A stretch of 64,000 nt of DNA from Perkinsus chesapeaki ATCC PRA-425 (taxonomy: Eukaryota; Protista; Perkinsozoa): contig JAAPAO010000114.1 in the NCBI GenBank assembly GCA_013115145.1, positions 8,385 through 72,384 of the forward strand, read 5' to 3'. Of this stretch, positions 3,171 to 40,700 are shown one piece after another. Position numbers and translations under genes: made by a program. The number at the start of each line of letters is the position of its first letter. Within the stretch, counting starts at the first letter, position 1. Under the pieces are notes generated by a model, which was not told the DNA's origin, made no database searches, and was given only the letters and a program-made list of their open reading frames with translations.

Positions 3171-4414
3171 TAAATATCCAATTTTCTAGGAAGCAACTCA
3201 GTGGATTTCGAAACTCCGGTGGACGGGCTATTCCGTCTTATTTTCTCAAACACAGTAACTGCGCAGCTTTGGTATAAAGCGATGAAGCCAACCAGAGTCG
3301 CATGAGTATGACAATTTTCAACACCAGCTGCTGCTGCTTTCGATGCGTTGGCGCTTCGGGAATGCGGCGATCAGTTTTGGATCAGTTGATTCACATGAGT
3401 AGCCTAGAATCTTTGGGACCCCATTCGGCCTTGCATCTCATCGTTCTCGAGTTCCTGCACCCGATAGAGGTAAACGCTTCAGGTTACCCGATTAGTTTGA
3501 ACGGGAAGGATGATAATTATCGTGTGATCTTTAGTCTAGGCAAAAAACCTCAGTTGTGGTTATACGGTAATATAATCGCGACTTGAAGCTCTTGTGAAGT
3601 TCTCCTGTAGTCTATTGGTAAACTAATGGTATGTCTGTTATACAGTTGGTCGGTCTACAGATTGTATAGCAATAAGTTGCTTCCAAATAGTGAAGAATGA
3701 TGATGACTTCATTAAATGTATAAGTTTCACAAAAGCCAAGTCGGTTTTCACTTCACTGCCACTTTCTCAAGATACTACTTGTGCGGTCACATCTTTATTA
3801 TCTCTCTGCGTTTGTCAGTAACTACTTCCAAGTTCGGATGATAGGTGGTTTCTACTAGCCTCTACATTACCGCACTCCGGCCATCCGTGGGATAGTACAT
3901 GGCAGTCGGTCTGTGACATAGCAAAACTCCAATGGTCCCGTTGAGCTTTCTGACAAACAGTAGAGCTTGTAGATCCCATACAAACTTTCCTGTATGACAA
4001 AATGAGTAAATTCTTCTAGAATATGGTTCTCATTAACATTGCAATCCCGCAGACGATTGTAGTAGTGCAACAATCCTCAGGCTGTCCCTCTAGCATTCAC
4101 ATCTATCGCTTTGTTGGCAGCTGTCACGGAAGCCATCGAAACAGCGATCGGTAAATAGTTAGGGGGTAGTCATTGTGACAGTATCTCTGCTGTCAGATAC
4201 GCCAGAGTCGCGAGGAGCGTACTCGGTTGCGCAGTTATCAATGCGCCTGAGTGAATCATTCCCGACTTGGTTTCTGCAGAAAGCGCGGAGCTTCCGTTTG
4301 GAGAGATTTCATAATTACCTTATTGGTAGCTTATCGTTCATGGTTTATTATTATTAAGCTAGGATAATCTGAAAACCGCGCCAAACTCTTTCTTCGGACA
4401 GAAGGAGCCGCGCG

Positions 4415-6441
4415 ATGAGCCTTGGCTTTGTTAAAAACGTAACAATTGTGTCATCCGTGCATCGACCAGCTCGGGTTCGCTATTCACTATAAGTAGCGAA
4501 CCCAAGCTCGCTACTTACAGTAGTCACCCTCGCCTGTTGATACGCTGGCACCTTTTCGGAATCCTACCGCTGATAATTTGCGCCTAATCGCTAATCTTGA
4601 GTCACCAGGCCGTTCGGAAGTCATCGGGGTGCAATGCTGTGCCGATACACAGTATCGAGATAACACTGTCTCACTGTTATCGCGGCTAATGGTTGATGCT
4701 GTCAGCCACATGGAGGCTTCTCACACTGCCTGCTTTGCCTCTCGCACTTGCGCACCTTCGGCCCCGCCTTCTCCCATGTTTGCGGGTAGATACTTTCGGT
4801 GTAATCGCTGCAGGAGGCTCCCACTCGGCGGTGCTCAGTGGATGGCCAGGGAAGCTCTACACATTCGGCGGTAACAACCTCGGGCAACTTGGCTCGGCCG
4901 GGCCTTCTCCCCGACAAGTTATTGCTGTTTCTTGTGGGTGAGTACCAGTACCCTCGCCAAATGGGAGTATTCTGCTAAGATACGGTCAAACCATTGCACT
5001 GCTTAATGACGGTGCAGTTTACGCATGCGGACAGACGCCTTCAGCAGGCTCATCTTCATTTGCTGTTGAAGATCCAACCACATGGTAGGGTCGGGACTCG
5101 AACTTGAGCGTGTAGGCTCCGGAATTGTCCCTCGGGCTCTGCCCCAGTGGGACTGTCTGCATCACTGTGCACGCCCTGGGGGCTTTTATAAGATTTTGTT
5201 GTCCTAGTCAACTTCCTAGTGGACAAAAACTGCATATTGAAGGGTACCCAAGAAGATATCGGTTGAAATACGACTACTTACACTACCTCGTTCGTAACTC
5301 TGTCGAGAGCTTACTTGGAGCTCTCCAGCGATGCCTTTGACCAATTCAATCATGGTTTAACTCGCCGAGTAAGTGCGAAGGTTCACGTGGCTATAAAGTT
5401 CTTCTTGAAGGCATTTATATAATGATACGTTTCGATACTGCCGCTGCTGCTGATTTACTGACGAAAACCATCTTGAACGCTTTCTGTGAGACCCAAGTTC
5501 GGTTAATACGAAAAAAAAGCAAAACCGATGTTGGTGGTATGCCGTATGCGTGATTGTGTCAGGTATCATCGACTAAACCAGTTTTCGAAGGTTGGTCTGA
5601 AATTTAAGGTAGCTCTGGTATCTGCCGGGCTGGACTTCACACTTCTCGCTACCACTGCTGGTAAAGTGTTTGGTCAAGGCTCCAATCCTTTCGGCGCCTT
5701 AGGCCTCGGTGAGCTATCAGCTACCTGTTGCTCAAAGCCAGTTTCACAGGCACGATAGTGTCAACCAATCAACCCGTTACCGAGTGGACGCCAGTAGTCC
5801 TTCCGAAGAATGTCATTGCGATCAACCTGGCAGCTGGGTGTTTCCATAGCGCCATAGTCGACCATCGCGGTTGGCTTTGGGTTGCTGGTAGCGATCTTCA
5901 TGGTCGGTTGGGCATTGAACGAGATCCATCATTTGAGTACGAGAAAGTTGCATTTTACCGGAGAATCTTCGACCTTCCTGCCATTTCTGCAGTAGCTCTT
6001 GGAAGTAGCCATTCTATGGCACTGAGCCAAGATGGCGACGTTTGGGGGTGGGGATCGAACGAGCGCGGCCAGCTGGGGCTGGGTTATGGTGGTGAGAACA
6101 TACGCCCTGTCCGGTTACCCATAAAGAATGCAGTTAGAATCAGTGCCGGTAGAACTCACTCGGCTTACGTCGACCGAGCTGGTTGCCTTTGGACTTGCGG
6201 CGACAACAGGAAAGAACAGTGCGGGTGGGGTTTTGATGGGATGGATACGATTTGCAAATTTGCTTTAATATATTCATCCATAGTTTCGGTTGCTTGTGGA
6301 TGGAGTCACACCATAGCTTTGCGTACCGATGGCGTTGTGCTAGCTTGTGGCAACCACGAGGACGATCGATTAGGTGTGGACGGCATGATTGCATTTGAAT
6401 CCATGATGACTGAAACACGTTACACATTCAGTTCTGAGTGA
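4415..6441 (+). CDS. RCC1/BLIP-II repeat protein (multi-exon; start uncertain)
   Basis: Repeated RCC1 blades: IAAGGSHSAVL...KLYTFGGNNLGQLG, VSAGLDFTLL...GSNPFGALGLG, LAAGCFHSAIVDHRG...GRLG, VALGSSHSMALSQDGDVWGWGSNERGQLGLG, ISAGRTHSAYVD, VACGWSHTIALRTDG. A ~41 nt gtgag..cacag intron near 5709-5749 explains the frame change. Stop at 6439-6441. Confidence 0.82.
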
Positions 6442-6551: not shown

Positions 6552-6763
6552 ATGTGAAGGGCAACATGTTGCGCGCAATGTAAAATAGCAAACGGCGAAG
6601 GAGTCTTCATGTGGTGTGCACGCCGCAAGGTTGTTCAATCACACAAACTGCGCATACGAATCTGTACAATGCGACGGTAGTTGTGTTTGGATAGATGCGT
6701 CGCATGTCGATCACAGTTGTCAGAATTGTTGATTTGCGCCCCACAACTTCCCATTTCGCTTAA
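6552..6763 (+). repeat. Split direct repeat A1 (212 bp)
   Basis: Matches 12314-12525 with 2 mismatches by eye (tacaAtgcg vs tacaGtgcg; cagAattg vs cagCattg). Its last base is the A of the gag ATG. Confidence 0.95.
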
Positions 6764-7926
6764 TGGCAGCAGCTCCCGTCATCAACTTGTCCCCTGGCTT
6801 GAAGGAGATTCTTCGCAAATACTGCGAGGATGAGAATCTGCTTTCCCTTGCGTGTGCAGTTCTACAAGAAGAGCAAGTGGTGCAGGTGCTATCTTTCTCC
6901 ACCCTTTCGGACGCGGACGTGAGCTCGATTCGGAAGAAGATCATCGCTAAGGACGATTCGTTCAAGGGTAAAGAGATTCTGATCAATACCTGCTTGAAGT
7001 CAGCGGTGCGTGACGCTAATTTCCAAGCGGACCTTGCTCAAGCTACTGACAAGATCGTTGCGCAGAAGGACGCTTCCTCGAATCAGAGGGCTGCAGCGGT
7101 GTCGAAGATGCATGAGAGAATAGAGGCCCTCAAGAAGGCGATGGGGGTGAAAGACATGAGGGCCAATATCCTACCTCCTATTTCGGTGTGGAGAAAGCTA
7201 TTGGTGGCTCTTCCTACCTATGTGGACTTCAACACCGACTTGCGTAACACTGATTATGCTGGCTCTATATTACCGGTACACGCCGACCCAGTGGGTATCT
7301 TTCTCCAGGCTTCAGACGACCAGCTGCCGACGGTGGTTCAACAGGTTGTTCCGAAGGACATCGCCGACAGGCGCAGCCGAGAGATGAGCGGGACCGCTTG
7401 GGCGGCCTGCTTTATAAGGTACTCCACCGCCCTTCTCCTAGCCGACATCGAGCAGGGCGAGGGAGCTAAGCTTTCGGCAAACATTGACGTGTTCACCTTA
7501 TGGTCGTATATGATGAGTGTCAATGTGCTAGCGGCGAAGTATGGTTGGTCTCTCGCCTACGACGTCGACTGCGCGTTCAGAAGACTCGTTGAGGCTCGTT
7601 GCTTGGAGGGAGCCGTGCCTTTACGTGAGGCCATCTCCGACACTGCTAGTTTTGCCCAAATCACTGTGGACAAGACTCTCTACGGGCGTCATCCCTCTCA
7701 TGCCCCGGCTAAGTCGGGCGCGGATGCGAAAGGAGAGTCTGCCACGCACTCGAAGAAGGATAGCAAGTCCGGTGCCAAGCGCTCCAGAGCTAACAGATCG
7801 TCTGGTAAGCTTTGTTACGAGTTTCTGGCGACCGGCTCGTGCAAGAGGCCTAATTGTCACTTTCGTCACGAGGATGCTGCTGGTACTCCTGCCGAGAAGA
7901 GACCGAAGGCTGGCCCCAAGAAGTGA
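6763..7926 (+). CDS. gag: Gag-like ORF1 of the YR retrotransposon (387 aa) with C-terminal CCCH zinc finger
   Basis: First ORF directly after A1. Basic C-terminal region followed by CYEFLATGSCKRPNCHFRH (C-x8-C-x4-C-x3-H). Confidence 0.8.
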   Translation: MAAAPVINLSPGLKEILRKYCEDENLLSLACAVLQEEQVVQVLSFSTLSDADVSSIRKKIIAKDDSFKGKEILINTCLKSAVRDANFQADLAQATDKIVAQKDASSNQRAAAVSKMHERIEALKKAMGVKDMRANILPPISVWRKLLVALPTYVDFNTDLRNTDYAGSILPVHADPVGIFLQASDDQLPTVVQQVVPKDIADRRSREMSGTAWAACFIRYSTALLLADIEQGEGAKLSANIDVFTLWSYMMSVNVLAAKYGWSLAYDVDCAFRRLVEARCLEGAVPLREAISDTASFAQITVDKTLYGRHPSHAPAKSGADAKGESATHSKKDSKSGAKRSRANRSSGKLCYEFLATGSCKRPNCHFRHEDAAGTPAEKRPKAGPKK

Positions 7927-8619
7927 GACCTGGGAATCGGAGTGGCCATCGTCCGACGAGGGAAGTAGTCTCTGTCATGCCCTTGTCAGCGTTTGTGTCT
8001 GTGTGGCTGTCATGAGAACAACCTTATTTACTACTGAGAGTTCGTCTTGTTGCGTTGTTACCCGGTGTAGTGGTCAGCATCGGCGCCGTGCCGTGGATCC
8101 TACCAGACCGGGTGGCTCTCCGCGTGCATCGGCGAAAGGCCTGATGACGCTTTCATAGAGAGTACAGGCATCGAGTGGAGGCCATCCGATAAGAAATGTC
8201 GGGCTGTGCCCTACTGCTGCCACGAGTTCGCCCCTGCAGCAACAAGGCTGTCACGCGATTTCTCGATTTGCGCTTCGGACTGAGGAGACAGTGCCGTTGC
8301 GTATTCGGAACGGAGACCAGGAGAGCGGCCGATAGGCGCTCTTGGCCAATGGGCGACGAGCCCGATGTGCGAGCCCAACGGGTCGGTGGTTTCCGCAGGA
8401 TAACCTTAGGGATCAGGAACATGGCTGATCTAATGCATGCGACGCCGAGTGGCGCACAGGTTCCGAGGCTGCCAGTGGCAGCCTGCCACGCGGGACCGCG
8501 TTCTACTTCTTGGCGGCGTGATGACGTCGCACGTTAGCGTACATTGACTACTAAAGTTTCTCTCGGGTTTCTCTCGGTGGATTCCTCCCATGGCCGTGAG
8601 AGGATTTTGTCTGCCTCAG

Positions 8620-10783
8620 GTTCATTCCTGACCGGCTCGATACCCGCGACGTTTGGCCTCATGTAAGTGCCCTGGTAGCCGATGCATTAGCTCGGGCTGA
8701 GGAGGAATGGCAAAAGGAGTCATCCGACCTCACTGACGGCACCGGGATTTTCGGCTCTCTGGACACGAACTTCTACGCGCCGTCTTCCCCGCTTCTGGAA
8801 AGGTTAGCGCGGACTCTGGACCTAGAGGTCGAAGAACTGTTAAGCTCAGAGACCGGCGAGGCTCTAGCTTCATGGCTCAACCTAAGCCGCCAGCAACAGT
8901 CCACGTCGTCGGCATGGTCAGACCATCTCCCAGTCTTGTCGGCCTGTGCTGATAGAATCCGAATTGAGTGGGCAAGGCTTCTTGAGGTGAATCCGCGCCC
9001 CGCTGAGTGCGGTAGTCCGGTACGGCCACTCCTAATGCAAGCCATCATCGCGGAGCTGGGAAATGCAGTTGGCGACGGTTGCAACTTCGATCTCCACTTT
9101 CTAGACTTGGTTGATAAAGGTTTACCGCTCGGTACATCCGGGGAGGTCCCGAGGAGTGGCGTGTGGCCCGCGCGGGAGTACGATGTGAGGGATCGGTTTT
9201 TCCCCATCTCGAAAGATTTATGGAGAGAGAACTACCGTTCTACTGCGGATTACGAGACCGAAGTCCAAGCGGCTATCTCGAAGGAGATAGCTCTCGGGCG
9301 CATGTCGGTGGTGGAACCCAACGAGATTCATAAGATCAAGGCCATCACCCGCCTCGGCTGTGTTCCCAGCTTTGACGCTGAGGGTAACGTCAAAAAAATA
9401 CGAGTGGTCGATGACCTAACCGAATCGGGCTGCAATACGTTGATTCGGAGCAACGTCTCCGAAACGATATTATTGCCGAATATCTCCGCCGCGTGCCGAA
9501 TTGCAGTGATGTGCAAGGTCGCGGACGTAGGGGGAGCCGATCCGCTTTATTGGGTTGAGAGTGACGTCAAGTCGGCGTTTAGGCAATTGAGGCTGTCTGA
9601 CGTCGACTCGTGGTTTTGCTGCAATCGTGTAGGCGAGAGAATCGTGAGGCATTTGGCCTTGCCCTTTGGGGCGGTATCCAGTCCCCTACTTTTCTGTCGT
9701 CTCTCGGGATTGGACTCGATCATCGCGACTGTTATGCTGTGTCTGTGTAGCCTATTCCACAGGCTCGTAACGTACATTGATGATAGAGGGATCCCAGTGA
9801 AACTACGTTTCGCCCTGAAAGTCGCGTTAGTTTCAGTTCTGGTTGATCTTATCTGCGGGATTGAGCCGGCCTTCGAGAAACTGTTTGTGTCTCAGCAACC
9901 TCATTGTTTGGGGTTTGTCCTGAACCTAGTGGAGATGACTCTCACTTTATCCGCTGAAAAGCTTCAGGTGTTCACAGCGAGTCTCGGGGGAGTATCTAAT
10001 CAGGGTGACTCGGTGGCTGTGAAGGACCTTGAAAAACTAGTTGGTCGCTTGGCCTGGGTTTCGGTTCCGTTCAAGAAATTACGGCCCTTCCTAATGCCAT
10101 TCTATGCCTCTCTTCATATCGGTAAATCTAAGTCACTCCGCTCGATTAAAGTGGGAAAGGCTCTAGCTTCTGCGGCCACATTTCTGAGACGGTTTTTCCA
10201 AACCGAAGCTGCTATACCTATGCACAGTCTCCTACCGGATATGGGAGATATGCATCGGACTGTGCTAGTGAGTGACGCCTGTACTAAGAAAATTGGAGGA
10301 TATGTATTACACCAGTTTGGAGAATCTGGTAATCGCATATTGTGGTACCAGGCTGATGTGACAGATCGAGAGCTTTCGGCATTACTAGATAAGCTACTCG
10401 AGAGGGAGAATGCGTCTTCGGCTATTGGCAGCCCTGAGATGTGTCTTTTGGAACTATTAGCCCTAGTGGTCGGCGCTGCTCAAGCTCCTCGGTCAAATCT
10501 GGTTGTTGCCGTGACAGACAATGAAGCGTGCTCACACGTTATCAAGTCGATGCGTAGCAGGTCGACGGCTCTCAGCAAGTTGATGCAATCGCTTATGGTT
10601 ATACGTCCACACTTAGCTGGGCGTAATTTGACGGCAGTCCATGTCGCCGGTGAGAAAAATGTACTTGCAGACTGGATATCTCGTTCCACGGCGAGCGAGG
10701 TGAGACATAGAATGGCCGGCGTACAAGATTGCGAGGAAGTGGACATCCGTGCGACGCTCCATGAATTTAACGAGTCTCTTTGA
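8620..10783 (+). CDS. pol: Reverse transcriptase-RNase H ORF2; frame open from 8600, no ATG until ~9035, predicted to be spliced to gag
   Basis: RT motifs VESDVKSAFRQL, LPFGAVSSPLLF, TYIDD, HCLGFVL. RNase H motifs VSDAC, LLELLAL, VTDNEA, HVAGEKNVLADWISR. In-frame stop at 8597-8599 bounds the frame. Confidence 0.92.
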
Positions 10784-10909
10784 GGAACGTGTTCCTATAA
10801 CGCGACTATCAATCGAGATAAGATGTGTATTTTGTTTCAACGACTGCCATCAGGATGTTGCGCCTATTAGACTCATTAATTAAACGGCACAGTTCTTGCT
10901 TTGTTCCTC

Positions 10910-12133
10910 ATGTTCGTCCCTCTCCCAAACTGTCAAAGCGAGCTGCGCAAGAGGAAATCGGCGGCTCCTGCCCAGACTATGCCAACGGTATGTGCTAGGA
11001 TCCAAAACCGGCTTGATGGATTCTCCTCACGTGAAGAGCGGATCCTTAGTTCGACGTCGATATCGTCCAACAGGCGGAAGAAGACTCGAGGTTCGGCAAA
11101 GCGTGCGGCGGAAGCTTCGCGCTCCGTGACCGAGGCCGACGTCGAAGCTGTGGTGCAAGCTGCGAGAGCGGACGGTACAAAAAGGTCGTATAGCTGCATG
11201 ATCAATCGTTATCTCGATATCATGAAGGCAACTGATAAGGATCCATATCCTTTGACTATCGAAAAGCTCTTGCATTTTGTGGTATGCTTGATTCGAGGTA
11301 ATTACACATTCGAAAGCGTGTCTCGCTACTCGAGGACAGTTAAACTTATAGCGAGACAGGAGAGAGGCGAGGTGCTAGACAAACTATCCGAAGAACGCTA
11401 TAGGTTGGCTCTAAAGGGCGCGTCGAAACTATGCGTGCAGTCGGGCCTCGAGGAACAGAGTCGATCCCCCACTTTCACTCGAGAGGAGGTTGTCTCCATC
11501 TCGTCTGTTTCTTCGCCTGGGAGCGAAATAATCGTATGTGGCTTCATACTCGGCATATGTTGCCTTTTGAGGCTCGGCGAGTTGTTGGAGCTTACCGCTG
11601 ACAACGTTGAGTTCGAGAACGACCTAGCGGCCGGTAGAGTTTTTGTGAAAAGGGGCAAAACCGACCAAGCTGGGGTCGGCGCTAGCATCTACTTCGGTTG
11701 TGTGTGTGACGGCGACCGACCGAATTTGAGCTGCCCAGTTCACCGCTTACACACCTGGATGACTAATTCCGGTGTAAAGGACAGTAGCTCAATACTCTTT
11801 CCGATATCTAGAGCAGATTTCATCGTAGGATTGGAGCAGGTGGCTGCGGTGACTCTCGGGGTACCACGTGTAGGCATGTCTTACACAGGCCACTCGCTAC
11901 GGCGAAGCGCTGCACAGATCCTCTTCCATAGCGGGGTCAGCATCGAGCACATTGTTGAAATGGGACGATGGCGGTCGGCCAAGTCCTTAACTGCCGCCTA
12001 TTTGAGAGGGGGCGTGTATCAGAGGAAGCGCCAAACCTCGTTCACGAAGATACTGATGCGTGACGAGGCAGTACCTTCTTTCTCGGGGAGTTCGGGAGAG
12101 TATGGGAGGAGCCTGGATTCTCACACCAGTTGA
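10910..12133 (+). CDS. Tyrosine recombinase ORF3 (start uncertain: ATG 10910 or spliced entry at 10939)
   Basis: Catalytic set R-K-H-R-W-Y: LLRLGELL, KRGKTDQAG, TGHSLRR, MGRWRS, AAYLR. Preceded by an N-terminal SAM-like binding region (GTKRSYSCMINRY). The stop codon lies inside repeat B1. Confidence 0.92.
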   Translation: MFVPLPNCQSELRKRKSAAPAQTMPTVCARIQNRLDGFSSREERILSSTSISSNRRKKTRGSAKRAAEASRSVTEADVEAVVQAARADGTKRSYSCMINRYLDIMKATDKDPYPLTIEKLLHFVVCLIRGNYTFESVSRYSRTVKLIARQERGEVLDKLSEERYRLALKGASKLCVQSGLEEQSRSPTFTREEVVSISSVSSPGSEIIVCGFILGICCLLRLGELLELTADNVEFENDLAAGRVFVKRGKTDQAGVGASIYFGCVCDGDRPNLSCPVHRLHTWMTNSGVKDSSSILFPISRADFIVGLEQVAAVTLGVPRVGMSYTGHSLRRSAAQILFHSGVSIEHIVEMGRWRSAKSLTAAYLRGGVYQRKRQTSFTKILMRDEAVPSFSGSSGEYGRSLDSHTS

Positions 12134-12316
12134 CGCTAAGCAGGTAGGCTTACCGACTCTGCTCGCGGCCACTTTCTCGTAAAGAGGTGTCCGTGCCTTT
12201 CCGGCTCTTTGCAGATGCTCTGGTGTAGAGCACCCAGCCTCGTGATTGGTGTTTGTGGTGTTAGGCACAAACACACATCACCTCTCCCAAACTCCCGAGC
12301 GGTTCGCGGTTTTATG
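12103..12316 (+). repeat. Split direct repeat B1 (214 bp)
   Basis: Identical by eye to 12543-12756. Shares its terminal ATG (12314-12316) with the start of A2. Confidence 0.95.
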
Positions 12317-12525
12317 TGAAGGGCAACATGTTGCGCGCAATGTAAAATAGCAAACGGCGAAGGAGTCTTCATGTGGTGTGCACGCCGCAAGGTTGTTCAA
12401 TCACACAAACTGCGCATACGAATCTGTACAGTGCGACGGTAGTTGTGTTTGGATAGATGCGTCGCATGTCGATCACAGTTGTCAGCATTGTTGATTTGCG
12501 CCCCACAACTTCCCATTTCGCTTAA
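12314..12525 (+). repeat. Split direct repeat A2 (212 bp)
   Basis: Copy of 6552-6763 with 2 mismatches. Confidence 0.95.
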
Positions 12526-12542
12526 CCCACCCACTTCCGCCC

Positions 12543-12756
12543 TGGGAGGAGCCTGGATTCTCACACCAGTTGACGCTAAGCAGGTAGGCTTACCGACTCT
12601 GCTCGCGGCCACTTTCTCGTAAAGAGGTGTCCGTGCCTTTCCGGCTCTTTGCAGATGCTCTGGTGTAGAGCACCCAGCCTCGTGATTGGTGTTTGTGGTG
12701 TTAGGCACAAACACACATCACCTCTCCCAAACTCCCGAGCGGTTCGCGGTTTTATG
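12543..12756 (+). repeat. Split direct repeat B2 (214 bp), right terminus of element
   Basis: Copy of B1, ending ...gcggttttATG before unique flank agctagtc. Confidence 0.95.
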
Positions 12757-37700: not shown

Positions 37701-40700
37701 TCATCGCAAGTGAGGGGGTGGTTCCCCCCAAATTCTAAGGTACCCTCTTTGTATGACCACCCACCGACCCCCCACGAAACCCAGGATACCCCCATAACCC
37801 TGGGTGGTAGGATATGTCAGTGACATAATGTCGCATTTCATGTGTGGAGGACTTCAGCTCGACAGACTGTTGACACTGTCGACAACAGCGTTTCAATATG
37901 AAATAGAGATTCAAACCCATCATTATTGAAATTCATAATTCATTAGAACTTCTGCCATCACGTTTATGACATGAATCACGAGTACCAGCTTAAGTAATGC
38001 CAGTAGAAGACTTTTATTGGTCAGCTGCCTCAGTAACACGTCGGCTTTACCCCCCCCCCCAGATTTTCACGCGCTAGAAGAGTCTTTGGTCGCAAGACGC
38101 CTCCTAAGTCTGCTCGTGAAATTATCGGAAGCCTTGATTCCGAGCTTTGATTCACAGAAGAAGTATGCTGTTACAATTCGACAGGATTTTTTTGCTGATG
38201 GATCGTGCTTGACCTCGACTTGCTGAGCCGCAGCCAAGGCCCTGTCCACAAAAAGGATAGCATTCGGGTCCGGGGGAGGCTTCGGATCGAGAGGGCATCT
38301 CCCAAATTTACTTCCATCCTTTTCGTGGTCATTGAAGGCGCGATCGACAGTCAACGGCTTGTCGCAGAACTTACAAACTCCTCGAACGTTTGCAACTTTT
38401 GCAGCGCTGCTGGTAGCTGTTGCCTCTTCTGTCGCCTCCTTCAGGTCAGCCGCCGCTTCCTTTTTTCGCTTTGCTCTTAGCTTCAGCTCTTTGCTCACTT
38501 CAACAGATGTGACAGGCTTAGGTGCACCGCCCAAGGGCGCGCCCATAGCTAGAACTTCTGCACGGGGTGCTTCATCAAAATACATATCGTCGTCAGGCTG
38601 CAACGACTGATCCATTTCAGCAATTGCTCCCGCACCGCGAACAGTGGGAGCTACAGCTGACGCCCTGAAGGAATTCAGCTTCTTGATGAAGGTCTTAATA
38701 CAATCCAAGGATATAGGGTGATAAGGCAGAGGCTTACGCCCTGTCAATAGAGCGTCATCGACTTCCTCGAGGGTCTTGCGCAGATATGCACGATACACAA
38801 ATGCAGCACAACCGTGACCGACAGGAGCCTCACTGCTCAAATTGCGGACAACGCCACGGATAGAGTCGGACCAGCGATTGAGCTTGACGCTGTGAGTTGT
38901 AGTGTGTAAGCTCTTGAGCCTACACAATTTGCGCTTTGGTCGGCCACTCTGAGCAGCTGCCTGAAACGCCAACTCGCCTTGGTCTGGGAGAATATCAGCA
39001 GGCGCATCACTCTCTTCTTCCTCAAACTCGAACTCCTCTTCTTCCCCCAGACCCTGACCGTCATCCATAACATCCAAGACAAGGTTCTCTGCGTCGTCTG
39101 CAGCACTTGAGGCATCAGCCTCCTCATCCGAATCGCAGGAATCTTTTTCTTCTTTTTCTTCTAACCACTCCTTGACGACATCGTCGTTCCTCTGAGCATC
39201 CAACATCTTGAGATACTCATACCCGAAGGTAACCCCCTCAGTATTCAGAGTGATGTCGTTAGCGGTGCCTTGGTCAAGCTGTGGCTGTGTAGCCTGATAC
39301 TCACTGGCCGATAGCGGGATGGGTATAGTTCCCAGCTGGCTGCCTGGGTCAAGCTGTGCGAACAAGCGTCGACTCGATAAGACTGCTCTCCAAAGCAGCT
39401 TGCTATCATAGACAGGCCCCGCAGCTCTGAGTTTTTTATGGGGCATACGTCCTCGAAAAAGAAAACTGGAGAAACGATAGACGAACCAAAACAACCAAAT
39501 TCTACGCAACCCCCTAGATTTTCAGGTGCTACAAGCGTCTTTGATGGCAAGACGCCCCTCAAGTCTGCTCGTGAAGCAAATTATCAGAAGCTTCGATCCC
39601 GAGCAATGTTTAGTCACAGAAGAAGTATGTTGTTACAATTCCACAGGACCGGTTGGCCACCACAACCTATGACAATCATGCGATGATTGTATGCACCGCT
39701 ACGCGTCGGCCAACCGTTGCCCCTGACCTCGTCAGAGAATGGGGCTTTCGCGTAGCTGCGATTTGGAGTGCACCGCTGATGACTCGGCGTCTAAACCGAC
39801 GTTACGGAGACAACAGGCACGGGAGATCGATCCAGGGAGGACGCGAGGCTTATTCCAATGAGCCTCATTCGAGATCTCTCAAGAGAGTGAGAAAGCGAGT
39901 TTCTACGAGAACCTATGCCGCTAACCTTTCACGACCCCGGAACCACCAAGTTTGTCATTGATGAAAGCACTGAGAATATTTGTGAACTACTTCCTGAAGC
40001 GGAGAGTCAAGTCAAGTGTTCCAAGCCAGGAGCGAGGGTGTGTCTTCCTCCGAATCTACCGATCACGCTTCCAAGGTCAGCGACGTTCTTTGGCTCGGAT
40101 CGAAGAATAGGACCATGATCTCATTTTTTATTGTGGGATTGACCTCAGAGCTCTACTCCACACATGCATACAAACCAACACAAACACGAGCGACACGCAG
40201 CTCTACATGAACGACAAAAAATCTATCGTCGTGTTTGGATTCAATCCATACTGCGTCGTTTTGTTTCAAAGGACTCGCGCTGAATGGGCTCGATCAACTG
40301 TCACGTTACGTGGCAGTCGAGCTGTCGTGAGTCACGTATGACCTAGAACAGAGCAATCATGTTCCAGCAGGTCTTCAGTAGAAATAGTGTAGTTGGACTG
40401 AATCGATAAAAAAACCAATCGGCTTCGTCGGCGGAAAAAGGCAGCCTAGCCTGGAATCAAGTGAAATAGATGCATCTTCGTGGCCTGCAGTACAGGCTCC
40501 TCATGCCCTCATCCACTTTGCACTCATACCCGGCTTTGGAGAGCCAAGGCCTTGCACGACACCGCTGTAGTACACTGTTATGTTGTGTCTTTATGGATGT
40601 TCGTTTGTATTATTATTCCTGGTTATTCAGCCACCCTTGTTCTACGCTGCTCGAGAGAATCGGGTGGAAATGTGCAAAATGTTGATAGAAGAACTGGGAG

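Follow-up and report, generated by a model that had tools for sequence, protein, structure and literature searches.

Introduction

Retroelements need to produce much Gag and little Pol from one RNA, while keeping a full-length copy as template. Ribosomal frameshifting and readthrough are the textbook answers to this need. A splicing-made Gag-Pol has been shown only for Ogre, a plant Ty3/gypsy element of the Tat lineage, in legumes. In Ogre, two ORFs are separated by a non-coding stretch full of stops, which is an intron, and splicing of a subset of transcripts restores one polyprotein frame, whereas genomic copies keep the intron, so that unspliced RNA is the template (PMC6317226, citing Neumann 2003 and Steinbauerova 2008; PMC3735527). 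In copia and BARE (Ty1/copia), splicing of the element's own transcript likewise changes the relative output of Gag and Pol (PMC3735527). DIRS-1 of Dictyostelium and the described Ngaro/DIRS elements encode RT-RNase H plus a tyrosine recombinase and have neither protease nor DDE integrase, and split direct repeats A1...B1-A2-B2 define Ngaro (PMC3783388). Published descriptions of these elements report overlapping or frameshifted ORFs and no natural intron; the word intron does not occur in PMC3783388 or PMC3266345, and in PMC7192593 introns are only engineered markers.

Here we examined a young Ngaro-type element of the clam parasite Perkinsus chesapeaki (ATCC PRA-425), in which a preliminary description had proposed that an intron removes the gag stop codon and fuses Gag in frame to RT-RNase H. 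The window, that is the whole stretch of DNA analysed, comprises 64,000 nucleotides (assembly GCA_013115145.1, contig JAAPAO010000114.1, positions 8,385 to 72,384 of the forward strand). Our data support the predicted intron by several lines of sequence evidence, yet in the absence of RNA data splicing remains a strong prediction.

Results

A predicted intron overlaps the gag stop codon of an intact Ngaro-type element

The element (hereafter W) occupies window positions 6552-12756, is present as a single copy in the genome, and is organized as follows.

6552-6763 (+), A1 terminal repeat of the split-direct-repeat (Ngaro-type) element; its last base is the A of the gag ATG
6763-7922 (+), exon 1: gag, 386 codons plus the first two bases (AA) of the junction Lys codon, with a C-x8-C-x5-C-x3-H zinc finger near its C-terminus (zf-CCCH, E 0.009, below the Pfam cut-off)
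7923-8619 (+), predicted spliceosomal intron, GT...AG, 697 nt, phase 2, holding the gag TGA stop (7924-7926)
7923-7930 (+), 5' splice site gaa/GTGAGACC, overlapping the gag stop codon (here and below a slash marks the exon-intron boundary)
8046-8126 (+), conserved intronic RNA element: leader TTGCGTTGTT (8050-8059), stem arms CCGGT (8062-8066) and ACCGG (8107-8111), then GGCTCT (8114-8119)
8549-8554 (+), TACTAA, a branch-site-like motif noted by eye 65 nt upstream of the acceptor
8600-8621 (+), 3' splice site gaggattttgtctgcctcag/GT, 7 codons after the RT frame opens
8620-10783 (+), exon 2: third base of the junction Lys codon, then 720 codons of pol (a conserved N-terminal domain with LxDGxG, RT with YIDD, an RNase H-like C-terminal part) and the stop
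10910-12133 (+), tyrosine recombinase ORF with its own ATG at 10910, not part of the fusion
12103-12316 (+), B1 repeat
12314-12525 (+), A2 repeat
12543-12756 (+), B2 repeat, 3' end of the element

The A1 and A2 repeats differ by 2 mismatches in 212 nt (99%), and B1 and B2 are identical over 214 nt, indicating a young and intact element. The recombinase ORF matches Phage_integrase (PF00589, E 9.8e-8, 32.4 bits, above the cut-off of 27.1). The reverse transcriptase matches RVT_1 only at E 0.001-0.005, below the cut-off, but a family profile hits caulimovirus, HIV-1 and Ty3 RT chains at E 3e-4 to 1e-3. No Pfam hit to a methyltransferase (which would mark DIRS), a protease or a DDE integrase was found, and only 126 nt lie between the pol stop and the recombinase ATG.

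The gag ORF (6763-7926, 387 aa) ends ccc aag aag TGA, and the RT frame is open from 8600, with its first in-frame ATG at about 9035, codon 139 after the acceptor. Between 7927 and 8599 (673 nt) there are 8, 7 and 5 stops in the three frames, so that readthrough or a single frameshift is impossible. The preliminary description was correct in its sequence statements apart from an incomplete stop list: the three RT-frame stops that it gave (8156, 8333 and 8597) are real, but are only 3 of 7. The gap is not a nested repeat, as its sequence is unique in the genome. The donor G is at 7923 (GTGAGA), and the acceptor, ttttgtctgcctCAG, ends at 8619. Joining 7922 to 8620 gives AA+G = AAG (Lys), followed by TTC ATT CCT GAC in the RT frame. 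The resulting product of 1107 aa is identical to GenBank protein FOL47_000717, which reads ...AGPKKFIPDRLDTRDVW... and maps as two exons, 6763-7923 and 8621-10780. Such models, however, are ab initio and show only that the sites please a gene finder. In C3492, a degenerate copy of a sibling family, the same annotation invents an 'intron' over a 40-nt indel that the intact copy C9 lacks, and in another sibling, C145, it threads three doubtful mini-exons through the gap.

The splice sites fit those of the host

We next asked whether the two sites resemble host splice sites. From 30 kinase loci we inferred 29 confident host introns, which give the consensus (A/G)A(G/A)/GT(A/G)(A/G)(G/T) for donors and YAG/GT for acceptors. 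On a matrix built from these introns, a small set that we inferred ourselves, the W donor scores 8.4 (host median 6.9), above 99.5% of all GT in the element, and the acceptor scores 6.5, above 97.9% of all AG in the element, with cag/GT being the host consensus. Only 3 in-frame GT...AG pairs exist, of which the proposed pair scores 14.9 and the next best 3.5. Random places in the same window reach 14.9 in 0.6% of trials (P = 0.006), and the same test gave P = 0.0125 for the sibling C29. In contrast, the test was not significant on its own for C145, C9, C622 and the P. marinus element (P 0.10-0.27). The length of 697 nt exceeds that of all 29 host introns sampled (40-505 nt, median about 51) and is about ten times that of the typical host intron.

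Intron position and phase are conserved in three Perkinsus species

If the intron is functional, related elements are expected to keep it. Seven diverged families from P. chesapeaki, P. marinus and P. olseni, with siblings only 35-42% identical to W in RT protein, have a donor over the gag stop (AA/GTRA) and an acceptor in phase 2 just inside the pol frame, as follows.

W: gaa/GTGAGA...ctgcctcag/G, 697 nt
C29: gaa/GTAATG...ttcttgtcag/G, 480 nt
C145: gaa/GTGAGC...tctgtcag/G, 985 nt
C3492/C9: aaa/GTAATG...ctttcttag/G, 1391/1371 nt
C622: aaa/GTAAGA, 171 nt
P. marinus GG681826: gaa/GTGAGC...cttgtctcag/G, 507 nt
P. olseni JABANM010031908: gaa/GTGAGC...tctctttcag/A, 535 nt

Likewise, a P. marinus-like Logan contig shows ttctttttcag/G three codons after the pol frame opens. 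In genomic DNA, gag and pol lie in different relative frames in different families, yet the same two sites always restore the frame, while the intron interiors are not alignable apart from one short motif. Donor conservation alone is weak evidence, because Gag tails are Lys-rich and AAG is 78% of Lys codons in these gags, so AAG-TRA could be inherited, and any stop preceded by G makes a GT. The rule holds for this clade and not for all YR elements in the genome, as the more distant YR families C3311, C457 and C224 do not have GT on the gag stop. A contrast of rates between intron and exons was uninformative, since the only close pair, C9 and C3492, is about 98% identical throughout.

We then examined where pol coding sequence begins. 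Residues invariant across 7 families (LxDGxG at W codons 37-42; W85, L88, R90, Q93 and S96) lie before the first in-frame ATG, which is codon 139 in W, 160 in P. marinus, and 60 in C9, P. olseni and the Logan contig. C29 and C145, however, do have an in-frame ATG before the conserved pol motif, 16 codons after the acceptor, so separate initiation is not excluded there.

None of the 67 RT matches scored in the genome has an open frame above 849 aa, so no processed gag-pol fusions were seen, and the spliced junction (24 nt, up to 2 mismatches) is absent from the genome. Every genomic copy examined keeps the intron, which fits the idea that unspliced RNA is the template. Searches for Logan-derived proteins crossing a junction found none: P. 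marinus pol gave only two GenBank models, the C-terminal part of P. marinus gag gave nothing, and W pol returned only its own gene model. Run SRR12548988, which may be RNA or DNA, holds an unspliced contig of a related element.

The intron carries a conserved leader and a covarying stem-loop

Comparison of the introns revealed an 18-nt exact match between W and the C3492/C9 intron (E 1e-4). The leader TTGYGTTGKT occurs once per element on the + strand, 77-181 nt into each intron, and is followed by a stem. On the four intron sequences the stem shows 92% paired cells, and 8 of 15 pairs have compensatory changes, whereas slid controls gave 29-49% paired. At most 1 of 500 shuffles reached the observed value on four of the five measures; for the count of further standard pair types, 177 of 500 did. 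This covariation rests on 4 sequences aligned to a model built from three of them. The covariance model scores the intronic RNA element of W at 16.9 bits (E 0.04-0.07). A genome-wide search with it found only the seed C29 and a 28-bit hit (E 0.03) in the 3' UTR of a cyclin-L-like host gene, which we treated as chance and left out of the final covariation count. Folding of the whole intron gave z = -2.9 on 20 shuffles, but the 87-nt motif windows gave z from -1.8 to +0.4, not significantly more stable than shuffles; thermodynamic stability alone does not support structure, and the case rests on covariation. ARAGORN found no tRNA or tRNA-like gene in the window or in 8 loci, and Rfam gave only a sub-threshold drz-agam-1 match at 8584-8615 on the minus strand (25 bits against a cut-off of 37, E 0.11), taken as chance.

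Discussion

We consider it probable that the full-length transcript of W has two fates. Unspliced, it would be translated into Gag alone, because the ribosome stops at the TGA, and would also serve as the template for reverse transcription, as inferred from the retention of the intron in genomic copies. In a fraction of transcripts, the host spliceosome would remove 7923-8619, rebuild a Lys codon and fuse Gag in frame to the RT-RNase H-like polyprotein, so that Pol, having no start codon of its own, would be made only as Gag-Pol. Splicing efficiency would then set the Gag:Pol ratio, doing the job that frameshifting or readthrough does in retroviruses. That splicing happens, that it is partial and that it sets this ratio are inferences, as no RNA evidence could be obtained.

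Other readings appear unlikely, though they are not excluded. Perkinsus mRNAs carry a spliced leader (PMC2868825), and trans-splicing at 8619 would explain a strong, conserved acceptor at the start of pol in every family, giving a capped pol mRNA translated from a non-AUG codon or from the ATG at about 9035; alternatively, pol may start by internal initiation on the full-length RNA. The early ATG of C29 and C145 agrees with separate messages, and the recombinase ORF, with its own ATG, shows that the element uses at least one separate initiation. This does not explain, however, a host-like donor sitting exactly on the gag stop in all seven families, nor why the phases always match. Moreover, in W, P. 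marinus, C9, P. olseni and the Logan contig, conserved pol residues precede the first ATG by 20 to about 100 codons, the 22-nt leader probably has no ATG, and three short out-of-frame ATG-stop ORFs follow the acceptor in W.

It is more doubtful still that there is no intron, and that the gap is a non-functional spacer or decay product in an element that no longer makes Pol. The annotation demonstrably bridges frameshifts with invented introns, this family has only one copy in the genome, and no RNA was seen, no RNA run being listed for this stretch. Yet the three ORFs are intact, the terminal repeats are 99-100% identical, a gap with the same boundaries and phase exists in seven families and three species, the splice-site scores are far above chance for W and C29, and the conserved motif and covarying stem indicate that the gap is under constraint. 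Constitutive splicing, in which only Gag-Pol is made from this RNA, Gag arises by proteolysis or not at all, and the template comes from a rare unspliced pool with no regulatory meaning, is likewise improbable. Both splice sites are strong by host standards, and nothing here measures splicing efficiency. However, no protease domain was found in the element, and YR retrotransposons lack one (PMC3783388); the retention of the intron in the copies examined, without a processed fusion among the scored RT matches, suggests that unspliced RNA is available and preferred as template, and in Ogre splicing is partial (PMC6317226).

The intronic element may explain why the intron is so much longer than typical host introns. 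We infer that it is a cis-acting signal present only on unspliced RNA, for packaging or template choice, nuclear export, or control of splicing. A tentative extension is that the leader (UUGYGUUGKU) and stem-loop are recognised, perhaps by the CCCH zinc finger of Gag, to select the unspliced transcript for export, packaging and reverse transcription, and possibly to hold back splicing. Such a signal would also explain why the intron is kept in every copy, and would represent a retrovirus-like logic of a packaging signal inside the intron, evolved independently in tyrosine-recombinase retrotransposons. The motif is a concrete, testable candidate for how a retroelement tells its unspliced RNA from its spliced RNA.

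Finding the Ogre solution in a different order of retroelements, in an alveolate parasite, conserved across three Perkinsus species, would show that it evolved more than once, and would give a tractable case, because P. marinus can be transfected. It matters also for TE annotation pipelines, which assume intron-less elements and would split these into a 'gag' and a 'pol without a start', or call them dead.

The remark in the preliminary description that no Gag-Pol fusion by splicing was known, made there of DIRS/Ngaro elements, needs correcting in that Ogre does this (PMC6317226, PMC3735527); for DIRS/Ngaro elements we found no report of it (PMC3783388, PMC3266345). Compared with DIRS-1 and the described Ngaro/DIRS elements, the Perkinsus clade has a predicted gag-pol intron. 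Retroviruses share the need for much Gag, little Gag-Pol and packaging of only full-length RNA, and in many of them the packaging signal appears to lie downstream of the major donor, so spliced RNAs lack it. In W, the ratio would be set in the nucleus by the spliceosome and not on the ribosome, and a role of the intronic motif in packaging is only a hypothesis. Ogre is an LTR element with protease and DDE integrase in land plants, and its intron, whose splicing is shown experimentally while that of W is not, lies after gag-pro; W instead has split direct repeats and a tyrosine recombinase. In this Perkinsus clade the donor overlaps the gag stop codon itself, and the intron is 171-1391 nt, against an average of 274 bp for the region between the two Ogre ORFs, and carries a conserved RNA motif. 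In copia and BARE, splicing removes pol sequence or creates a stop to give a Gag-only message, and the unspliced RNA encodes Gag-Pol. In the arrangement predicted here the logic is reversed: unspliced RNA would give Gag and spliced RNA would give Gag-Pol.

Organization of the element and of the gag-pol gap

Examination of DNA of Perkinsus chesapeaki, an alveolate parasite of clams, showed that positions 6552-12756 hold a complete tyrosine-recombinase (YR) retrotransposon with the split direct repeats that define Ngaro-type elements. The repeats and the three ORFs that lie inside the element are as follows.

6552-6763, A1 repeat
6763-7926, gag (387 aa), with a C-x8-C-x5-C-x3-H finger
8600-10783, open frame encoding RT with a YIDD motif and an RNase H-like end
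from 10910, tyrosine recombinase ORF with its own ATG
12103-12316, B1 repeat
12314-12525, A2 repeat
12543-12756, B2 repeat

A1 and A2 differ at 2 of 212 bases, whereas B1 and B2 are identical. The family has a single copy in the 41.7-Mb assembly, and the gap between gag and pol is unique sequence. An ORF with RCC1 repeats (5713-6441; RCC1_2 E 2e-26, 91.4 bits, above its cut-off of 22) ends about 110 nt upstream of the element.

A preliminary description had proposed that an intron at 7923-8619 removes the gag stop codon and fuses Gag in frame to RT-RNase H, and we found all its coordinates to be right. Gag ends ccc aag aag TGA, and the 673 nt that follow contain 8, 7 and 5 stops in the three frames, therefore readthrough or one frameshift cannot link the ORFs. 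The G of the last Lys codon plus the TGA gives GTGAGA at 7923, and seven codons into the pol frame lies ttttgtctgcctcag/G, ending at 8619 (a slash marks the predicted splice junction here and below). Removing 7923-8619 (697 nt) rebuilds AAG and continues TTC ATT CCT GAC in the pol frame.

A protein search with the pol piece returned one hit, GenBank FOL47_000717 (1107 aa, 100% identical), which reads ...AGPKKFIPDRLDTRDVW... and maps as exactly the two proposed exons. The deposited model agrees with the preliminary description, but it is weak evidence, as the models are ab initio. In C3492, a degenerate sibling of the element, GenBank model P0004 draws an intron over a 40-nt indel (locus L037 5071-5200, compared with L035) that the intact copy C9 lacks, indicating that ab initio models in this genome can hide frameshifts in dead elements. 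In the sibling C145 the annotation threads three small exons through the gap.

Comparison with host introns

To obtain a yardstick for the proposed splice sites, we searched the genome with Pfam Pkinase, built an HMM from intact kinase domains, located exon pairs in 30 loci (L040-L069) and resolved 37 introns, 29 of them with confidence. Host introns are mostly tiny (mode 41-64 nt, median about 51), with an overall range of 40-505 nt; at 697 nt the predicted intron is longer than every host intron in our sample. The host donor is (A/G)A(G/A)/GT(A/G)(A/G)(G/T), the donors GTAAT(A/G) and GTAGG being as common as GTGAGT, and the acceptor is YAG/GT. On these matrices the donor of the element studied here (designated W), gaa/GTGAGACC, scores 8.4 (host median 6.9), higher than 99.5% of all GT in the element, and the acceptor ...ctgcctcag/GT scores 6.5, higher than 97.9% of all AG. 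Only three GT..AG pairs can join the two frames; the proposed pair totals 14.9, whereas the next totals 3.5. Random donor and acceptor windows of the same size elsewhere in the window reach 14.9 in 0.6% of trials.

Predicted splice sites in related families

The genome holds sibling families whose RT is 35-42% identical in protein, and protein searches led to further ones in P. marinus (GG681826, locus L071) and P. olseni (JABANM010031908, locus L072). In every family where both ORFs are present, a non-coding gap separates gag from pol, and in every case the best in-frame pair uses a donor lying on the gag stop and a phase-2 acceptor just inside the pol frame. Among these copies, C3492 carries gag and RT frameshifts and C145 contains an N-gap.

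Predicted splice sites and intron lengths in W, its sibling families in P. chesapeaki (C numbers) and its relatives in P. marinus and P. olseni. Columns: family; donor; acceptor; intron length (nt).
W; gaa/GTGAGA; ctgcctcag/G; 697
C29; gaa/GTAATG; ttcttgtcag/G; 480
C145; gaa/GTGAGC; tctgtcag/G; 985
C3492 and C9; aaa/GTAATG; ctttcttag/G; 1391 and 1371
C622; aaa/GTAAGA; two candidates tie; 171 (or 228)
P. marinus; gaa/GTGAGC; cttgtctcag/G; 507
P. olseni; gaa/GTGAGC; tctctttcag/A; 535

Furthermore, a Logan contig 98.5% identical to P. marinus DNA, which is unspliced, shows ttctttttcag/G three codons after its pol frame opens. The genomic frame offset between gag and pol differs among families, and even between C9 and C3492, yet the same two sites always restore the frame. 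The chance test is significant for W and C29 (P 0.006 and 0.0125), whereas it gives 0.10-0.27 for the others. The terminal AAG is not strong evidence by itself, since AAG makes up 78% of Lys codons in these gags. In contrast, the more distant YR families C3311, C457 and C224 do not show GT on the stop. In the P. olseni element the pol stop is also overlapped by a host-like donor (gag TAG gtt = GA/GTAGGT, within L072 3270-3370), and GenBank model P0171 fuses pol to the recombinase; however, W, C29, C145 and P. marinus have no GT on the pol stop, so a second fusion intron is not general.

Conserved pol sequence upstream of any ATG, and retention of the predicted intron in genomic copies

We examined whether pol has a start of its own. 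An alignment of the first 130 residues after the acceptor from seven families shows invariant positions, LxDGxG at W codons 37-42, then W85, L88, R90, Q93 and S96. These lie in a domain of roughly 170 residues between the junction and RT (8621-9130; residues 388-555 of FOL47_000717) that is conserved across families but has no Pfam match, and its motif is not the D-T/S-G of aspartic proteases. The first in-frame Met is codon 139 after the acceptor in W and 160 in P. marinus, and codon 60 in C9, P. olseni and the Logan contig. Conserved coding sequence therefore lies upstream of any ATG in five of seven aligned families, which calls for an upstream start, that is, gag. C29 and C145, however, do have a Met at codon 16.

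None of the 67 RT matches scored in the genome has an open frame above 849 aa, and the spliced junction is absent. If the intron is real, reverse transcription uses unspliced RNA, the situation described for Ogre.

A conserved candidate RNA element inside the predicted intron

Comparing the introns revealed an element not noted in the preliminary description. Three matches were obtained: an 18-nt exact match between W and C3492/C9 (E 1e-4), a 31-nt match between P. marinus and P. olseni, and a 16-nt match between W and C145. All lie 77-181 nt after the donor and share TTGYGTTGKT. This motif occurs once on the + strand of W, C9, C29, C3492 and P. olseni, and twice in C145 and P. marinus, where the second copy lies between pol and the recombinase. 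A second copy of the leader motif (TTGCGTTGGT, TTGTGTTGGT, TGCGTTGGT) was noticed in the spacer between the pol stop and the recombinase ORF in C145, P. marinus and P. olseni, at the following positions.

L038 1301-1338 (-), C145
L071 13911-13941 (+), P. marinus
L072 about 3340-3360 (+), P. olseni

W has only GTTGCGCC there (10858-10865). The motif may mark both inter-ORF regions. A weak match (11 bits, E 1.9) of the leader motif, GUGUUUGUGUUGGUU, lies at 40141-40187 (-), outside any recognised element.

A stem follows the leader at once, and its sequence differs between families while pairing is kept: CCGGT with ACCGG in W, CCGAC with GTCGG in C145, CCAC with GTGG in C3492, CACTGGT with ACCAGTG in P. 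marinus, CCCGAT with ATCGGG in P. olseni and CCCTG with CAGGG in C29. After the stem comes GG(N)TCT. A covariance model built from P. marinus, P. olseni and C29 finds W at 8046-8126 with 16.9 bits and E 0.04-0.07. On the four intron sequences, 92% of cells pair and 8 of 15 pairs show compensatory changes, although there are only four sequences, aligned to a model built from three of them. On four of the five measures at most 1 of 500 shuffles reaches the observed value, whereas for the count of further standard pair types 177 of 500 do; slid controls pair at 29-49%. Single-sequence stability is not significant, and the genome-wide scan did not recover W, C145 or C3492 at E up to 1. A 28-bit match to the model (L074 1501-1563 (-), equal to G000:C2183:5065-5127) lies about 250 nt after the stop of a cyclin-L-like host ORF with an RS-rich tail; there is no retroelement homology nearby, so it is probably chance. 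Our working hypothesis is that the RNA element inside the intron may be a signal carried only by unspliced RNA.

Predicted expression of Gag and Gag-Pol

In the absence of RNA data, we consider the existence of the intron likely, but not demonstrated. Most likely, one transcript serves two uses: unspliced, it yields Gag and serves as template, and spliced, it yields Gag-RT-RNase H, while the recombinase is translated separately from its own ATG. Splicing efficiency would set the Gag:Pol ratio; partial splicing and the role of the RNA element are inferences. The main alternative is spliced-leader trans-splicing onto the same acceptor, which explains the acceptor, but not the donor on the stop or the lack of an ATG.

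Surveys of DIRS and Ngaro elements do not mention natural introns (PMC3783388; PMC3266345), and in the DIRS-1 work introns are engineered markers only (PMC7192593). EST work noted retroelement transcripts in P. marinus without detail (PMC2868825). The copia and BARE elements splice to make Gag-only messages, which is the reverse logic (PMC3735527). In contrast, Ogre elements of legumes, which the preliminary description did not take into account, have an intron between gag-pro and RT-RH-INT that is spliced in a subset of transcripts to give the polyprotein (PMC6317226; PMC3735527), the same mechanism as that predicted here, in an unrelated order of retroelements.
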